The notes under the pieces are model-generated. The model was not told where the DNA came from. It ran no database searches and saw nothing but the letters and a program-made list of their open reading frames with translations. Of a stretch of DNA of 64,000 bases, positions 28,250-64,000 are shown piece by piece. The position numbers and the translations under genes were made by a program. The stretch lies in assembly GCF_006345805.1 (NCBI RefSeq), contig NC_042998.1, positions 195,300,001-195,364,000 of the forward strand, read 5' to 3'. Positions within the stretch are counted from its first letter, which is position 1. Each line of letters opens with the position of its first letter. This DNA is from Octopus sinensis (Eukaryota).

Positions 28250-28599
28250 ATATATATATATATATATATGTATACATATATATATATATATATATATATA
28301 TTATATATATATATATATATATATATATATATATATGTGAATTATTAAAAATTTCCATGTGTGCAACCAAACAGAAAAAAATTCGGCAGGATTGGTAATA
28401 ATGACGATAATAATAATTTATGAGACAGAATTATCAAAGAAATCTCTTTCACAAAATCCCAAATCTATTAAAGTAGAGCCGCAATTCTTTAAAGACCGGA
28501 GTTAGTTCCCGTTGTTCTTCCTCATTAAGAGTATTTCTTGTTCTTGTTTCCCACGCACCTTGATTGCTTGATCAGTTCCACTTGACAACTGACATTTAA

Positions 28600-28811
28600 G
28601 AGAAAATCCAATCAAATATATACAAGTGATTGGTAAGTAACTGTCTAAAGAAACAGATACCCCATTTACGATTATGTGGACCTGAAAAATATTAATTAAC
28701 GTTTGTTGTAGAAATCTAGAAATTCTCTTGAAGCTGTCGTTGTCCACTCAGACTCCAGTTCTCACGTCTTCCTCCTTCACTCTTTCTCTCCATATCTATT
28801 ACTATGTAAGT
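28600..28811 (+). promoter_or_regulatory. Putative promoter and non-coding first exon of ZNF copy A
   Basis: CCAAT (28608-28612) and inverted ATTGG (28629-28633), a pyrimidine-rich stretch, then a CTAT|GTAAGT donor at 28806; acceptor just before ATG 30912. No transcript evidence. Confidence 0.5.
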
Positions 28812-29444
28812 ATTTATTTAAACATTTCTATTATATATGTGTCGTATTATGTACATTTATTTGTTTCGATGTGTTGAGAAAGTAAAAGGAAAAAAAAAAA
28901 ATCTCACTAAGACGAAATTATACGAAAGGCTGTAATTTTAATACTTTTATTGTGTTGTCGTTTTCTTTTAGACATTTCATTGCACTTTTGGTTATTTTCT
29001 AAATTATTTGTAAAAACGTCGGATCAATCCCTTGTTTAGATAACATTTATCTTTCTTTCTAACGTGTAAATTCGACAATTTCGTTAAATGCGGGAAAATT
29101 ACGATGTAATTTGTTAGAAATGGGGAATGTATAAAAATACGAGTGTGCACTTGAAATACTGAAACGAAAAGCAAATATCGCATCGAGAGGAAATGGAAAA
29201 GCTTTTATTTGAAACATAGGAAGTCTTTATTTCTGGTGGTTCTTCTGCATCATTAAAAGTTAGAATTAATGTGGTTTTCTAATTAATTTAATTTTTGTGT
29301 GTGTGTAGTGCTGCTTTAAGCACCTAATATAATCCCTCGTCACATATTTTTATTTGCGGGAATTTTCAGAAATTTCTGCGTACGAGAATTCGTTCGGTCA
29401 GGCAACCAAAAAAAGAAAACAATGAACTGTGATTTATGAGCTAT

Positions 29445-29700
29445 TTAGCTGTTATTTTTCGCACATCTCACGACCAGTATGGTAATAATTCTCTGCTTAA
29501 GTTCCTCTGGGCTTGCAGGAAGAGGGGAGACATAGACTAGGCCCTCTCTGAGAAAGAAATGGCAAGGTGTCCGCTCAGGTGAACGTGGCAGCCATTTCAA
29601 CAGCACATTGCCTTCTTCAGGACGCGCCAAACTCTTTGGAGGAATCTGGCTTTCATTCTCCACATCAACCAATAATTTTTCCTACATTAAAATTTCCCCA
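29445..29700 (-). mobile_element. Tc1/mariner-superfamily transposase C-terminal relic in the ZNF intron (copies at ~42150-42400 and ~54190-54440)
   Basis: WLPRSPERTPCHFFL...VY..P.S.EELKQRI resembles the WPPRSPDLTPCDFFLWG...LEELKQRI motif. Confidence 0.7.
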
Positions 29701-60284: not shown

Positions 60285-61433
60285 TAATATAATAATAATA
60301 ATAATAATAATAATACTAATAATAATAATAATAATAATAATGAAATTATTGTATACAGTGTTCAGGTGCACCACAACTTGTCAAAAGTGCATATAAAGCA
60401 TATGCAGTGATGTACAAATGTCTGGGAAGCGAACAGTGTATGTGTCAGATACATGCTTGTGTGTGTATGGAGGGGAGAAAATCAAGTGTAGCGTTGGCGG
60501 ATCTCAGGAAGCATGGAAGTTTTGAAGGATGCAGTGCTCCGACAACTAACAACTGATGCCGGCAGTTTGTTCCATGCTTCAGCAACTCTCAGCATGAAAA
60601 AATGTTTCCTGAAGTCATGGGAACTGCTGTTTTCTTACTTTGTAAATATGTCCACGGGTGTTAGATGGGTGGAGTTTGAAAAGGTGCTCAGAGTTATTGT
60701 TTGTACGATGGTTGATAATTTTATGGGTGTCTGCCACTTCAACTGCCAGACGTCGGAGTTTCAATGTGTCCATGCCCAGGGAAGTAAGGCGTTCAGGATA
60801 TGGCAAATGCCTGATGGAGGGTATTCTTTTGGTTGCACGTCGCTGAACAGCTTCCAGACGATTGATATCCTGGGCAAGATAAGGGTTCCAGACCAGTGAT
60901 GCAAATTCCAGGTGAGGTCTTACCATAGCTATATAAAGCCGCAGATGTATAGCCGGAGTGCGGCTCACAAAGGATTTGGTGAGTGATGCCAAGACACCCT
61001 CAGCCTTCTTGACAATTTTAGCGATGTGTTTTGTCCAACGCAAATCACTGTCGACAATAACACCCAGGTCACGTTCACATGAAGACTTTTTGAGACTAGC
61101 GTTGTGGAGGGAGTAGGTGGACGCTGGGTTTCTCCCAAAAGGCATGGTGGTACATTTGTCCTCAGCCAGCTTGAGTTGCCAGTCCATGATCCACTGCTGC
61201 ATTGTGTCCAGGTCTGCTTGCAATAGAGATCTATAGTGTACAGGATTTGACCTCTTTATTTTGAGGTACAGCTTGATGTCATCTGCATATTTCAGCACTG
61301 TGGCATTCTTTAAGTTGGCATCTATATCATTAACATATGCAACAAATAAAAGGGGGCCAAGAACAGATCCCTGTGGTACACCAGATGTCATCTCATAGGG
61401 CGAAGAGTGCTGTCCTAGAACTGTGACAACCTC
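60285..61433 (-). mobile_element. Duplicate of the CR1/L2-type fragment in the copy C flank
   Basis: ORF 60615-61391 near-identical to 34708-35484; same truncation point. Confidence 0.9.
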
Positions 61434-63493
61434 ATAAAATTGTGCATAAAGTGTATTAAGTAATTACCGTATTCCAATTTCCTTCAGTTTTCAGTGAGTA
61501 GCAGATGAGCGACTATCTTTTGATGCAGACACAATACAGGCTCCACTTTAGAGTGTTTTGGTTTCAGGAATAACCCAATCCATTGCCTCACTGGACACCG
61601 AGGCCATGACTAGTGACCGGGAGCTTTTGTTTTTGGATAATGGATAAACAGCTAAAAGATTATATAAATATATATTTATAAAATTAAAGACTTAAATCTG
61701 TAAGAGATGCAAAGCAAAAAGAGAAGAATTCAATTAAGAATGCATCGGGTGAAAGAATATTGGTTTAAAAAACATACGACATAAAAATGAAGACTATAAG
61801 GAATATGAGGGAGATAGGGTGAATCCTTTCTATTTGACAATGATCGGGCATTGTCTTGTTGGAAGACTAATGCTTTTCTGTTGGTAATCTCCAGCCGCAG
61901 TTCTTTGATATATTTTGGTTCAAATTAGCCAGTTGACGACAGAACACAACAGAATGAATGGTCTGGTTTCATGGGAGAAGGTCATATTAATGCCTTTATG
62001 TTTCCACCAAACACAAAGGACGGGTTTGTTGCCATGGATATTCATCTTTGGCTGCTTGGGGGATATTTCTGCAAACTCCAGGATCAGTTTTGCACATTAA
62101 GCATGCAATCCATTTTTCGTCTCCAGTCAGAAGTCGTTCCAAAAAAGGGCATGCTTTCTTTCCTTTTCAAAAGCATGTCCCAAACGGAATACTGGTCCCA
62201 GCAATTCTTATCTAAGAGTTTCAAGCACCCATATATTAAAGCAAAGAGTAAGATAGAAAGAGGAACAGAGAGAAGTGTACATGATATGTGATAGAGGGGA
62301 ACATAATATTTCTTACATCGTTAAAAAAGTCAGTTGAAGTTGATGATATAGAGAAGTTAGCAATATAATTTTAGCAGAGTGGTGATGTTCTGATGGTGAG
62401 ATTTGAGGCACAAAGAGAGAGAGAGAGATGATGGTTGTGGTGGAGGAAATGGTGATGGACAGTGCATAGTTAAAAGTAATTTGTTTTTAATTGAACAAAG
62501 TTTTTTTTATATTACGTATTTGCAGAATCGTATGAATTAACCTGTAAAAAGTCCAAAATCACAATAATTTGACATTTCACACCCCTTTTTTACATGAACA
62601 AAATGACAGCTTCCAAATATTGTTTTCTTAATGGGTAAGAATGATCAAACTTTAAACCACAGTGTGACACATTCATATCTGTGTGAATACGCAGGTATAC
62701 GTAAGTAGAATACATCCCCACTTTTGGCACTATTTTGTTAGTGACAGTATAAAGTTTATATGTATCACTACGCTGAATGTAGTCCAGTTCGTGTAACATG
62801 AAAAGGTAATTAAACACGTAAAAGAATAACAATGGCTTCGTATTGAGTTGTTTATCCCATTAGAACGAAATAAAACATAACATGGTGGCAGCGGTGGGAT
62901 AATTAATCGGAAAATGTTTTTTAGGCAATTAAACCAATGGTATATTTTGATTTTAAAAAACGTAAATATTTTCTCTTTTTATTCATGATAAAGTTTTTTC
63001 CAAATAAATGAAAAGACAAGTAACTAATTCTGCTCGATTACAAAGCAGAGGCAGAATAATCTCACGGTTTCTGCTGCAGGATTTCCACCTCGCGCTGACA
63101 ATCCATTAGAGTAAGGGAGACTGCTATATTTGTCTTCACTGCCAAAAGACCCCTTTTTTTTTTCAAAAAAAAAGGGATGTTACACGTTCATATATATGCG
63201 TGGGCGTGTGTGTGCGGAATACGTCCCCGCTTTTGGCACTATTTTATAAGTATTACTACGCTGTGTCTAAAGTTATACCGGTGTCGCTGCGCGGAATGTA
63301 GTCCAGTTCGCGTAACATGAAAAAGTAATTAAACACGTAAAAGAATAACTATGCTTCGTATTGAGTTGTTTATCCCATTAGAAGAAAACAACACATAACA
63401 GTGATGAAGCCGAATATTGAAGAAATCTCTTTCACAAAATCCCAAATCTATTAAAGTAGAGCCGCAATTCTTTAAAGACTGGAGTTAGTTCCC

Positions 63494-64000
63494 TTGAACT
63501 TTCATCTGCGTTTTGAGAAGTTTGCTGCCTTTTGTTGAGAGAGTTAGATTTTTTGCTCATCGTTGTTTGTGTTGGTTGTTGATTGAACGGTGCCCGTTGT
63601 GTAACGGTGGTTTTCGCCCTGCGGGGCGGAGAATTCTGTGTTTGAAATTGTTGTTGCCTTCGAGGTGGTTTTTGAAACATTTTTGAGAAATGGATTTCGA
63701 CTTGGCGTCGAGGAATGATTTTCCCGCGATGGTGAATTGGGGGACACTGAAGTGGCAAAACGGTCTTTTTCGGCCGCGGTGGGCGGAACCATGATGGACG
63801 TTGAATCCAGGATCGAACAGCTGTTCGAATTTGGGAACTTTGTAAAGGTGGAGGGAGGCGAAATCGAGTTTGTGCCGCCGCAGGCGAAGGTGCAAGAGGC
63901 AGAGGAAGGAACAGTTGTATACAAGGTGTATAGCTGCAAGGAGGGGAAAATTATGGACGTTAGAAGCGAGATGGTCGAGGAGTGCTTGTCCCCGGTGTGG
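63494..64000 (+). mobile_element. Tx1/L1-clade element, copy 3 (5' part; runs off the window)
   Basis: TSD at 63481-63493, then near-identical to 37594 onward. Confidence 0.9.

Follow-up and report, generated by a model that had tools for sequence, protein, structure and literature searches.

Three tandem units of about 12 kb, found in a 64,000-nucleotide stretch of the Octopus sinensis genome (the window), form a very young, unannotated and lineage-specific poly-zinc-finger cluster. The cluster is of a known kind, its birth-and-death pattern is ordinary, and no new mechanism is revealed by the locus. As a whole, the data are best explained (probability about 0.8) by a very young tandem C2H2 cluster of at least three units, shaped by duplication, by exchange between units and by turnover of the fingers. 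The presence of a tandem zinc-finger cassette, noticed earlier from the letters of the DNA, is confirmed by the arrays delimited by a repeat finder, by backbone matches and by the identity of the flanks.

The left end of the cluster falls within the window, unit A being the leftmost. Homology of A to B and C begins at about 28496, after a common TAAAGA, and a scan of the window revealed no C2H2 motif left of unit A. Self-BLAST, in which 28497 matches 41206 and 53248, sets the unit periods at 12,709 and 12,042 bp.

28497..41205, + strand: unit A, 12,709 bp, with upstream segment, finger exon and transposon-rich 3' flank (self-BLAST)
41206..53247, + strand: unit B, 12,042 bp
53248..64000, + strand: unit C, with the 3' flank cut by the window end

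Each unit consists of a 2.4-kb upstream segment, one finger exon made of 84-bp repeats and a 3' flank composed of transposon remnants. Units are oriented head to tail and share one common junction; no whole-unit copies are found elsewhere in the window, and neither terminal repeats nor target-site duplications were detected around a unit. The original prediction of two nested scales of birth, 84 bp and 9-14 kb, stands in that both scales exist, the larger being about 12 kb. Three units are present as predicted, but they are not all complete: C is frame-broken and cut by the window end, and A is shortened.

Period-84 arrays of 22.8, 23.7 and 35.8 copies were identified by Tandem Repeats Finder at 30982-32899, 43675-45665 and 55718-58711. 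The 36-bp backbone quoted in the prediction occurs 55 times (up to 3 mismatches), always on the + strand and within the three arrays, and is not found in shuffled sequence. All 69 regular-expression matches to C-X2-C-X12-H-X3-H fingers with TGEKP-like linkers similarly lie within the arrays, which encode poly-C2H2 fingers of the Kruppel type with a 28-residue consensus. Cut against an 84-bp consensus, the arrays comprise 24 (A), 25 (B) and 38 (C) units. Fingers preceding the stop are 21, 23 and 36, the numbers that had been anticipated (21, 23 and about 36), and all nine helix strings quoted with them are present. Relic units lie past the stop, three in A (a stranded 22nd finger, then two relics), two in B and two in C.

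30945..32957, + strand: array A, 24 units; one finger stranded behind a premature stop, the ancestral TAG at 32778-32780, two relics
30912..32702, + strand: ORF A, 596 aa, 21 fingers, closed by a TGA-TAA double stop in the A21 linker
43629..45725, + strand: array B, 25 units; B02-B04 repeated as B09-B11, B20-B21 as B22-B23
43596..45548, + strand: ORF B, 650 aa, 23 fingers, ending at the ancestral TAG (HTG*KPY)
55672..58849, + strand: array C, 38 units, frame-disrupted
55639..56580, + strand: first open frame of C and the sole ATG-initiated one, 313 aa, about 10.7 fingers

Only B is a full-length open copy. Zinc ligands are lost in A through His to Tyr changes in A04-A06 (second zinc ligand) and a Cys to Ser change in A08, and in B through Cys to Ser changes at the second ligand of B02, B08 and B09. 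Altogether, a zinc ligand is missing in 7 of the 44 fingers of A and B (15-19%, 3-4 per array). In array C two ligand changes (C02 Cys to Ser, C03 His to Gln) are accompanied by seven small indels and one in-frame stop. C11 has a 2-bp deletion at about 56567, C15 a local frameshift (+2 at 56893, -2 at 56915), and C24 a 1-bp deletion at about 57623; C17 (57014-57093) carries two 2-bp deletions, which are found also in C29 (58017-58096), and C20 is interrupted by a TGA at 57292-57294. Array C had been taken as part of a complete unit, but it is not an intact coding array, and its first open frame ends at 56580. Of the three copies, B is probably functional and A shortened, whereas C would be reduced to a 10-finger stub or else be a pseudogene.

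The upstream segments have been delimited by three-way alignment.

28497..30911, + strand: upstream segment, unit A
41206-43595, + strand: upstream segment, unit B
53248-55638, + strand: upstream segment, unit C

Those of B and C are 99.7-100% identical, and that of A is 97-99.7% identical to either; finger 1 is the same in all three arrays (84/84). The near-frozen flanks that had been described are real, non-array DNA being 97-100% identical between units. Splice sites and first exon have been called from consensus motifs only. In unit A, GTAAGT donor candidates are located at 28633 and 28806 in a putative non-coding first exon; the intron predicted next spans about 2.1 kb, hosts a SINE-like insert and ends with a pyrimidine tract and a putative AG acceptor at 30908-30911, directly 5' of the ATG. 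Two exons seem to make up the gene, and the predicted product consists of Kruppel-type C2H2 fingers only, after a 10-residue leader. Pfam matches in protein B are to zf-C2H2 (E=2e-110) and zf-H2C2_2 (E=4e-185), and no Pfam domain was found in the three + frames of the 2.4-kb upstream segment. KRAB (PF01352) is missing from ORF B and from the + frames of the upstream segment at E<=1; PR/SET (PF00856/PF21549), KRAB-related and SSXRD domains are missing from the ORF and the upstream-segment frames, and no SCAN domain was found. The protein is hence free of KRAB and SET domains, as had been expected. No homologue sharing the N-terminus of the cluster proteins was found in the protein database searched, so that no independent annotation backs a gene at this locus.

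The 3' flanks of A and C are 99.2% identical, those of A and B 97.0%; the distal 3.5 kb of the latter pair are about 100% identical. Over 6.35 kb, 37700-44048 and 49753-56091 are 99.83% identical. Three transposon remnants have been delimited in the flanks.

34405..35524, - strand: retroelement fragment with an RVT_1 piece (Pfam RVT_1, E=4e-15) in unit A; also at 60310-61431 in C, absent from B
37800..41000, + strand: degraded LINE-like element, second copy at about 49850-53050, co-duplicated with the gene; boundaries approximate
47372..47779, unstranded: 408-bp SINE in unit B only, 88-94% identical to 17072-17476, 1470-1855 and 9200-9585

The notion that the 3' flank is the same base for base in all units fails, since B lacks the 1.1-kb RT-bearing segment and hosts the private 408-bp SINE, which presumably resembles an abundant octopus SINE. 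Other copies of the retroelement fragment are found elsewhere in the window. The LINE-like element includes a zf-RVT match (E=1e-10), along with Exo_endo_phos and zf-CCHC matches that are weak and below the Pfam cutoff; its copies are 99.8% identical and its 3' end adjoins the next unit. Because co-duplicated transposon debris is found at the same positions, the units are shown to stem from segmental duplication at the DNA level, and retroposition has been discarded as their origin. What was duplicated, in head-to-tail order, is a 12-kb segment comprising the gene and the retroelement debris that follows it.

Informative sites group the units differently along their length. Upstream, 35 sites join B to C, 7 join A to C and 1 joins A to B; in the proximal 3' flank, 92 sites join A to C, 15 join B to C and 8 join A to B. 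Relic finger C38 is identical to A24 (84/84), and C37 is nearer to B24. The mosaic flanks indicate that unit C is recombinant: a later exchange between units made it a chimera, grouping upstream with B and downstream with A.

Arrays have been restructured also internally. The largest event is a duplication in C.

56176..58180, + strand: tandem duplication of a 12-finger block, C07-C18 = C19-C30, 997/1006 columns identical

Both copies of the block carry the same two 2-bp deletions. The block is the newest duplication in C, and copied two earlier frame-breaking deletions. Smaller blocks are found in the other arrays: B02-B04 and B09-B11 are identical (84/84 each), B20-B21 match B22-B23 at 82/84 and 81/84, and A05 equals A06 (84/84) within a block duplication spanning A04-A06. 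The minisatellite-like turnover originally envisaged is thus corroborated, as blocks of 1, 2, 3 and 12 fingers, near-identical and in register, are duplicated in the way unequal exchange in a coding minisatellite predicts. The 84-bp array behaves in each copy as a coding minisatellite gaining in-register blocks, a gain that goes on in C after the reading frame was already lost. Since array C grew after frame loss, minisatellite dynamics are a mutational property rather than evidence of selection for length. Homogenisation within arrays was not detected, backbone identity being 87.6% within and 87.4% between arrays (permutation p=0.13). Concerted evolution by gene conversion within arrays was considered and rejected, fingers being no more alike within than between arrays. 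The backbone had been described as homogenised even at synonymous sites; this is true of third positions in two-fold codons, in which diversity is low (0.00-0.07), but not of four-fold backbone codons (0.19-0.63).

Change is concentrated at the helix, as proposed: contact codons, which would be expected to receive 14% of the nucleotide changes, account for 28-35%. Contact positions are also far more variable than the scaffold, amino-acid entropy per codon reaching 3.1, 2.7 and 2.8 bits at -1, +3 and +6, and not exceeding 0.6 at ligand and core positions. Over all pairs (Nei-Gojobori, NG86) dN/dS of contact codons is 1.00, a saturated value (pN = pS = 0.48), and the case for positive selection rests therefore on short branches. 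These were taken as the 39 edges of a minimum spanning tree that carry no more than 6 differences, a procedure that uses observed fingers as ancestors and ignores gene conversion. Along them, contact codons have 44 nonsynonymous and 0 synonymous changes (P about 1e-4 to 1e-5 against neutrality) and the backbone 47 and 21 (omega about 0.55; Fisher p=8e-6 against contact codons). Contact pN (0.116) is 2.5 times backbone pS (0.047; p=2.6e-4). Backbone omega is 0.29 over all pairs, and on edges it is below 1 with P=0.017 to 0.08 (up to 6 differences) or 1e-4 to 3e-3 (up to 12). Diversifying selection at -1, 2, 3 and 6 is hence seen on short branches, with scaffold dN/dS below 1. Related fingers diverge mainly via single-nucleotide, amino-acid-changing substitutions at -1, +2, +3 and +6, accruing some 2.5 times faster than backbone synonymous changes, while the scaffold is constrained. 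The patterns suggest that in the past of the family DNA-binding specificity was under diversifying selection, and that the family evolves by birth and death. The newest mutations are degenerative, and include zinc-ligand losses, a stop codon and frameshifts. Of the six edges with a single difference, two change Cys to Ser, and one each replaces His by Gln, Gly by a stop, Phe by Ser and Ser by Leu.

Such lesions may be read in another way, the cluster being functionally dead. Three copies would decay neutrally, helix diversity would be inherited from the ancestral array or from older family history, and array restructuring would be purely mutational, due to unequal exchange in a tandem repeat. 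This is unlikely overall, though it fits several observations. C grew by 12 fingers when already frameshifted, A stops early at the double stop, 7/44 fingers in A and B miss a ligand, and 6/6 one-difference changes are damaging with 0 at a contact residue; backbone omega is about 0.55 on short branches, up from 0.29 over all pairs, and the N-terminus is absent from public protein sets. Ligand losses and the raised short-branch omega together imply that the whole cluster may be decaying. Yet a 650-codon frame open over 23 repeats, as in B, is hardly expected under long drift, though the copies are of very recent origin; omega in the backbone stays below 1, and the large excess of N over S at contact codons is not produced by neutrality. 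Also improbable is an assembly artefact, in which mis-joining of reads, or assembly of both haplotypes, would have turned one or two real units into three, or produced the 12-finger block of C. The 6.35 kb at 99.83% identity between successive units and the 12-finger blocks 99.1% identical would fit it, and most differences are 1-2-bp indels in short repeats, a typical long-read error; several indels parting near-identical copies lie in dinucleotide runs (GTGT, ACAC, GAGA) and could be assembly errors. It is at odds, however, with the private SINE of B, the 1.1-kb retroelement fragment found in A and C only, the 2-3% substitutions between A and B, and the completely different finger orders; moreover, over 30 other fingers keep the context of the C17/C29 deletions intact, and this speaks against a systematic error.

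Two further explanations are less probable still. The cassette might be cargo of a mobile element, its copies arising via transposition, as the LINE-like 3' end with its AATAAA-like tail is terminal to the unit and adjoins the start of the next. Units are nevertheless strictly head to tail, with one junction and the same internal transposon debris, lack terminal repeats, target-site duplications and other copies in the window, and the LINE is internally deleted, without a recognisable RT core; we give this very little credit. Least credible of all is a PRDM9-like hotspot specifier, or other meiotic reader of DNA motifs, built on a minisatellite finger array. Near-identical 84-bp fingers in one exon, variation at -1, +3 and +6 and rapid change of repeat number would suit it. 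PRDM9 works through histone methyltransferase activity; PR/SET, KRAB-related and SSXRD domains are missing from the ORF and upstream frames, and the locus is multi-copy and partly broken. The recombination-specifying role put forward in the original prediction is accordingly not supported, its defining PR/SET domain being absent.

In the favoured reading of a young tandem C2H2 cluster, the product would be a sequence-specific DNA binder contacting about 3 bp per finger, and fast-evolving repeats or transposons are by analogy the leading candidate targets. Lacking an effector domain, it would act by occupancy or via partners bound by fingers. An active effector-less family, with minisatellite arrays under positive selection tracking transposons or satellites in a cephalopod, is a tentative and rather doubtful extension; if true, it would parallel, in an invertebrate and without KRAB, the arms race between KRAB-ZNF genes and transposons. 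For the zinc-finger genes of octopus in general, recognition of transposons has been suggested before (PMC10547256, PMC12513265). The link between C2H2 and repeat expansions in cephalopods is called open by recent reviews (PMC12513265), and the locus could offer a tractable case on which to test it. Birth and death of a zinc-finger family are cleanly recorded here: gene duplication, recombination between units, finger-block gain, contact substitution and early decay are visible together in 36 kb at less than 3% divergence.

The locus shares features with several known systems. FiNZ genes of cyprinid fish (Wells et al. 2023, PMC10547256) are likewise a young lineage-specific family of tandem finger arrays with selection on contact residues; they form a large family of proposed transposon repressors defined by a conserved N-terminal domain, whereas the leader is here 10 residues long, with no such domain. 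Like PRDM9, the locus, read from one haplotype sequence, has single-exon 84-bp fingers varying at -1, +3 and +6, with a similar backbone, hypervariable contact codons and fast change of repeat number, but it lacks PR/SET and is multi-copy, and its fingers are on average 77% identical, against more than 95% in PRDM9. Vertebrate KRAB clusters, as on human chromosome 19, also feature whole-gene tandem segmental duplication, in-register unequal exchange of fingers, positive selection at -1, 2, 3 and 6, degenerate fingers, pseudogenes and birth-and-death evolution. In contrast, KRAB (PF01352) and SCAN are missing here, and with them any known route to silencing of the TRIM28/KAP1 type. Clustered, tandemly duplicated C2H2 genes with variable contact residues are documented in octopus and other animals (PMC9795677, PMC10547256, PMC12513265). 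Coleoid clusters are similarly composed of multi-finger Kruppel-type genes without vertebrate-type effectors, arranged in tandem in DNA rich in repeats; variability is highest at the contact residues, and a link to transposons has been proposed for them (same references). The subfamily described here differs in its N-terminus, absent from public protein sets, and in age: the main octopus C2H2 expansion is tens of millions of years old, about 41 Ma (PMC9795677), whereas these units differ by only 0.2-3%.

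Three tandem arrays of 84-bp C2H2 finger repeats, on the plus strand, were detected by Tandem Repeats Finder. Self-BLAST and three-way alignment assign them to three head-to-tail units (A, B and C) with periods of 12,709 and 12,042 bp, the last of which is cut by the end of the window. Homology among units sets in abruptly at about 28496, following a common TAAAGA. Arrays and mobile sequences are arranged as follows.

28497, start of unit A; 30982-32899, array A
41206, start of unit B; 43675-45665, array B
53248, start of unit C; 55718-58711, array C
34405-35524 (A) and 60310-61431 (C), minus strand, fragment with a piece of RVT_1, found in units A and C only
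about 37.8-41.0 kb and 49.9-53.0 kb, plus strand, LINE-like element matching zf-RVT and, weakly, a zinc knuckle and an endonuclease
47372-47779, 408-bp SINE, in unit B only, with further copies in the window

The 36-bp finger backbone quoted in the original prediction recurs 55 times at no more than 3 mismatches, on the plus strand only and inside the three arrays only, and is never hit in shuffled sequence. The C-X2-C-X12-H-X3-4-H motif is not found in any frame of the window outside the arrays, and there are no further finger genes or relics; the cluster accordingly has its left end inside the window and its right end beyond it. The same transposon debris recurs at matching positions from one unit to the next, which shows segmental duplication at the DNA level.

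Each unit begins with a 2.4-kb upstream segment, devoid of long open frames and of Pfam domains in all plus frames; a hidden effector-domain exon was looked for in this duplicated DNA and not found. Two candidate GTAAGT donors are found in the segment (28633 and 28806), and a pyrimidine tract and AG immediately precede the ATG at 30912. A short non-coding first exon, followed by an intron of about 2.1 kb, is plausible on the basis of splice consensus. The putative intron of each unit (29840-30140 in A) carries GTGCC.CCGGCAC-type motifs related to those found in the unit of a 138-bp tandem repeat at 852-1125; the likeness, judged by eye, suggests an element of the SINE or MITE kind. The coding exon opens with 10 residues, at once followed by fingers, and matches only C2H2 families in Pfam: it lacks KRAB and SET, as had been anticipated, and also SCAN and BTB. 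A PRDM9-like role is rejected because the defining PR/SET domain is absent from the ORF and from the upstream frames. All units share an ancestral stop, a TAG replacing the Glu of a TGEKP linker (32778, 45546, 58670), and two degenerate relic fingers are located 3' of it.

Cutting the arrays against the 84-bp consensus delimited the finger units, and the three copies differ in condition.

Copy A: 24 units, 21 fingers in frame (596 aa), closed by a double stop (TGA-TAA) that precedes the ancestral stop by one finger
Copy B: 25 units, 23 fingers in frame (650 aa), the sole full-length open copy
Copy C: 38 units, about 10.7 fingers in frame, the first frame ending at 56580; not open

Substitutions of zinc ligands occur in both A (last zinc-binding His to Tyr in fingers A04-A06, first Cys to Ser in A08) and B (second Cys to Ser in B02, B08 and B09). 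Unit C had been described as intact, but its reading frame is disrupted by indels and by a TGA.

C11, 2-bp deletion
C15, +2/-2 local frameshift
C17 and C29, two 2-bp deletions each, the same pair in both
C20, TGA stop
C24, 1-bp deletion

A tandem duplication of 12 fingers (C07-C18 / C19-C30) is identical at 997 of 1006 columns. Since the C17 and C29 deletions are present in both copies of the block, the frame was broken before the block was duplicated, and growth of the array hence needs no selection. The sequences in which these deletions fall (CACTGTGATATC and TCATTCTCTCAT) are uninterrupted in dozens of other fingers, and a systematic sequencing error is therefore unlikely at these sites. 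Indels private to array C, located in GTGT, ACAC and GAGA runs, could result either from slippage or from assembly error. Copy B would be translated, according to its reading frame, into a many-finger DNA-binding protein lacking an effector domain.

Variation is concentrated at the helix, as predicted. Among 59 distinct fingers, amino acid entropy is 3.1, 2.3, 1.4, 2.7 and 2.8 bits at helix positions -1, +1, +2, +3 and +6, respectively, and does not exceed 0.6 bits at zinc ligands and core residues; mean nucleotide identity among fingers is 87.5% in the backbone versus 63.8% in the helix block. The 81 units feature 46 distinct -1 to +6 helix strings, only 10 of which are common to more than one array, and many strings differ from another by one residue. 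The homogenisation claimed to extend to synonymous sites holds for two-fold third positions, which are nearly invariant (diversity 0.00-0.07), but not for four-fold backbone codons, where diversity is high (0.19-0.63). By comparison of backbone identity, fingers are no closer to each other within an array than between arrays, and the three arrays give no sign of ongoing within-array conversion.

All-pairs Nei-Gojobori dN/dS is 0.29 outside the helix and 1.00 at contact codons (-1, +2, +3, +6); because the latter value is saturated (pN = pS = 0.48), a short-branch analysis was used in its place. In a minimum spanning tree of fingers, 39 edges with up to 6 differences were considered, observed fingers being taken as ancestors. 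Contact codons, expected to take 14% of the nucleotide changes on the tree, collect 28-35% (P from 2e-3 to 1e-18).

Contact codons, 39 edges: N:S 44:0, pN 0.116
Backbone codons, 39 edges: N:S 47:21, pN 0.025, pS 0.047

The two N:S ratios differ by Fisher's test (8e-6), and given a neutral synonymous fraction of 0.19-0.23 the counts at contact codons have a P of about 1e-4 to 1e-5. The ratio of contact pN to backbone pS is 2.5 (p=2.6e-4), and varies from 2.2 to 2.5 across all depth cut-offs. Finger changes are scattered single-nucleotide substitutions rather than multi-site tracts, which argues against import through micro-conversion. These short-branch counts, with observed fingers as ancestors, are read as a real signal of diversifying selection in the past of the family. 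The youngest layer, that of one-difference edges, has another character: it consists of Cys to Ser (twice), His to Gln, Gly to stop, Phe to Ser and Ser to Leu, and none involves a contact residue; these damaging changes, along with the frameshifts, point to present-day decay.

Flanks had been described as near-frozen. Identity is indeed 97-100%, but flanks are mosaics in which informative sites switch from one unit to another. Upstream segments of B and C are 99.7-100% identical, and that of A matches them at 97-99.7%; in the proximal 3' flank A is 99.2% identical to C, and 97.0% to B, with transposon indels. Upstream informative sites group B with C in 35 instances, A with C in 7 and A with B in 1, and downstream sites A with C in 92, B with C in 15 and A with B in 8. 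Allegiance switches at the 3' end of the array, where C37 is nearer to B24 and C38 is identical to A24; unit C is accordingly a recombinant of B-like and A-like units. Successive units are 99.83% identical over a continuous 6.35-kb stretch (37700-44048 versus 49753-56091), spanning the LINE, the upstream segment and fingers 1-5. Between the 99.8% identical LINE-plus-upstream copies (38006-41401 and 50059-53443), 8 of 10 small indels are 1-2-bp deletions in the second, 7 of them within the GC-rich LINE part, and the long LINE ORF of 432 aa is split into 160 and 298 aa; the cause may be genuine decay or an assembly error affecting one copy only.

The locus fits the standard birth-and-death model of lineage-specific poly-ZNF clusters. 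Tandem segmental duplication comes first, followed by exchange among units; finger arrays are mutationally unstable, changing in register, contact residues diversify, and certain copies are lost fast. A simple unequal crossover, leaving an A, hybrid, B order, is rejected: the hybrid is the third unit and not the middle one, and the proximal 3' flank of B is the outlier. As a single A-B crossover would place the hybrid in mid-cluster, more than one exchange occurred, or units exist beyond the window. That the units are an assembly artefact is improbable: both private transposon insertions and finger orders differ among them. It seems rather unlikely that the family is an active repeat-tracking system operating without KRAB.

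To the left of the cluster, 1.25 kb from its boundary, is an AT-rich palindrome about 2 kb long (arms 25262-26184 and 26321-27247, 95-99% complementary, 136-nt spacer). Long (AT)n tracts flank it (24632-25126 and 27208-27897), and GC content is 20-23%. Such palindromes are known fragile sites. The SINE belongs to a family of about 400 bp, with copies 87-94% identical at 47372-47779, 17072-17476, 1470-1855, 9200-9585, 2160-2546 and 28043-28239; the copy at 47372-47779 may resemble the abundant octopus SINE. This copy entered unit B after B had split from A and C, hence some SINE activity postdates the duplication. Two further repeats, a 185-bp tandem one (8011-8718; 3.8 copies at 98% identity) and an 825-bp direct one (9639-10463 / 10445-11267, 99.6% identity), are probably satellite or transposon structures. 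A single exon of SepSecS (PF05889; O-phosphoseryl-tRNA(Sec) selenium transferase) is found on the minus strand at 241-396, within an ORF spanning 193-597; its best database matches are fragments (ENA/Logan) at most 89% identical, and the next exon lies outside the window. Searches of the window for RNA genes gave neither an Rfam family nor a tRNA.

A search with full-length ORF B retrieved generic poly-ZNF proteins of vertebrates and molluscs, 33-60% identical, and nothing else. No protein among 5.8 billion shares three 5-mers with the N-terminal 47 residues, exact-product look-ups of ORFs A, B and C, of the RT fragment and of the SepSecS ORF gave no match, and text search retrieved no paper on the SINE core. 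The cluster is an unannotated addition to a known type of poly-ZNF cluster, with an N-terminus absent from public protein sets, and is instructive rather than surprising. An existing proposal, drawn from predicted motifs and contact-residue entropy (PMC10547256), is that octopus zinc-finger genes, taken as a class, target transposons; this has been called an open question (PMC12513265). Octopus genomes host clustered, tandemly duplicated C2H2 genes, and one study (PMC9795677) puts their main expansion at about 41 Ma; in comparison the units described here, diverging by 0.2-3%, are far younger.
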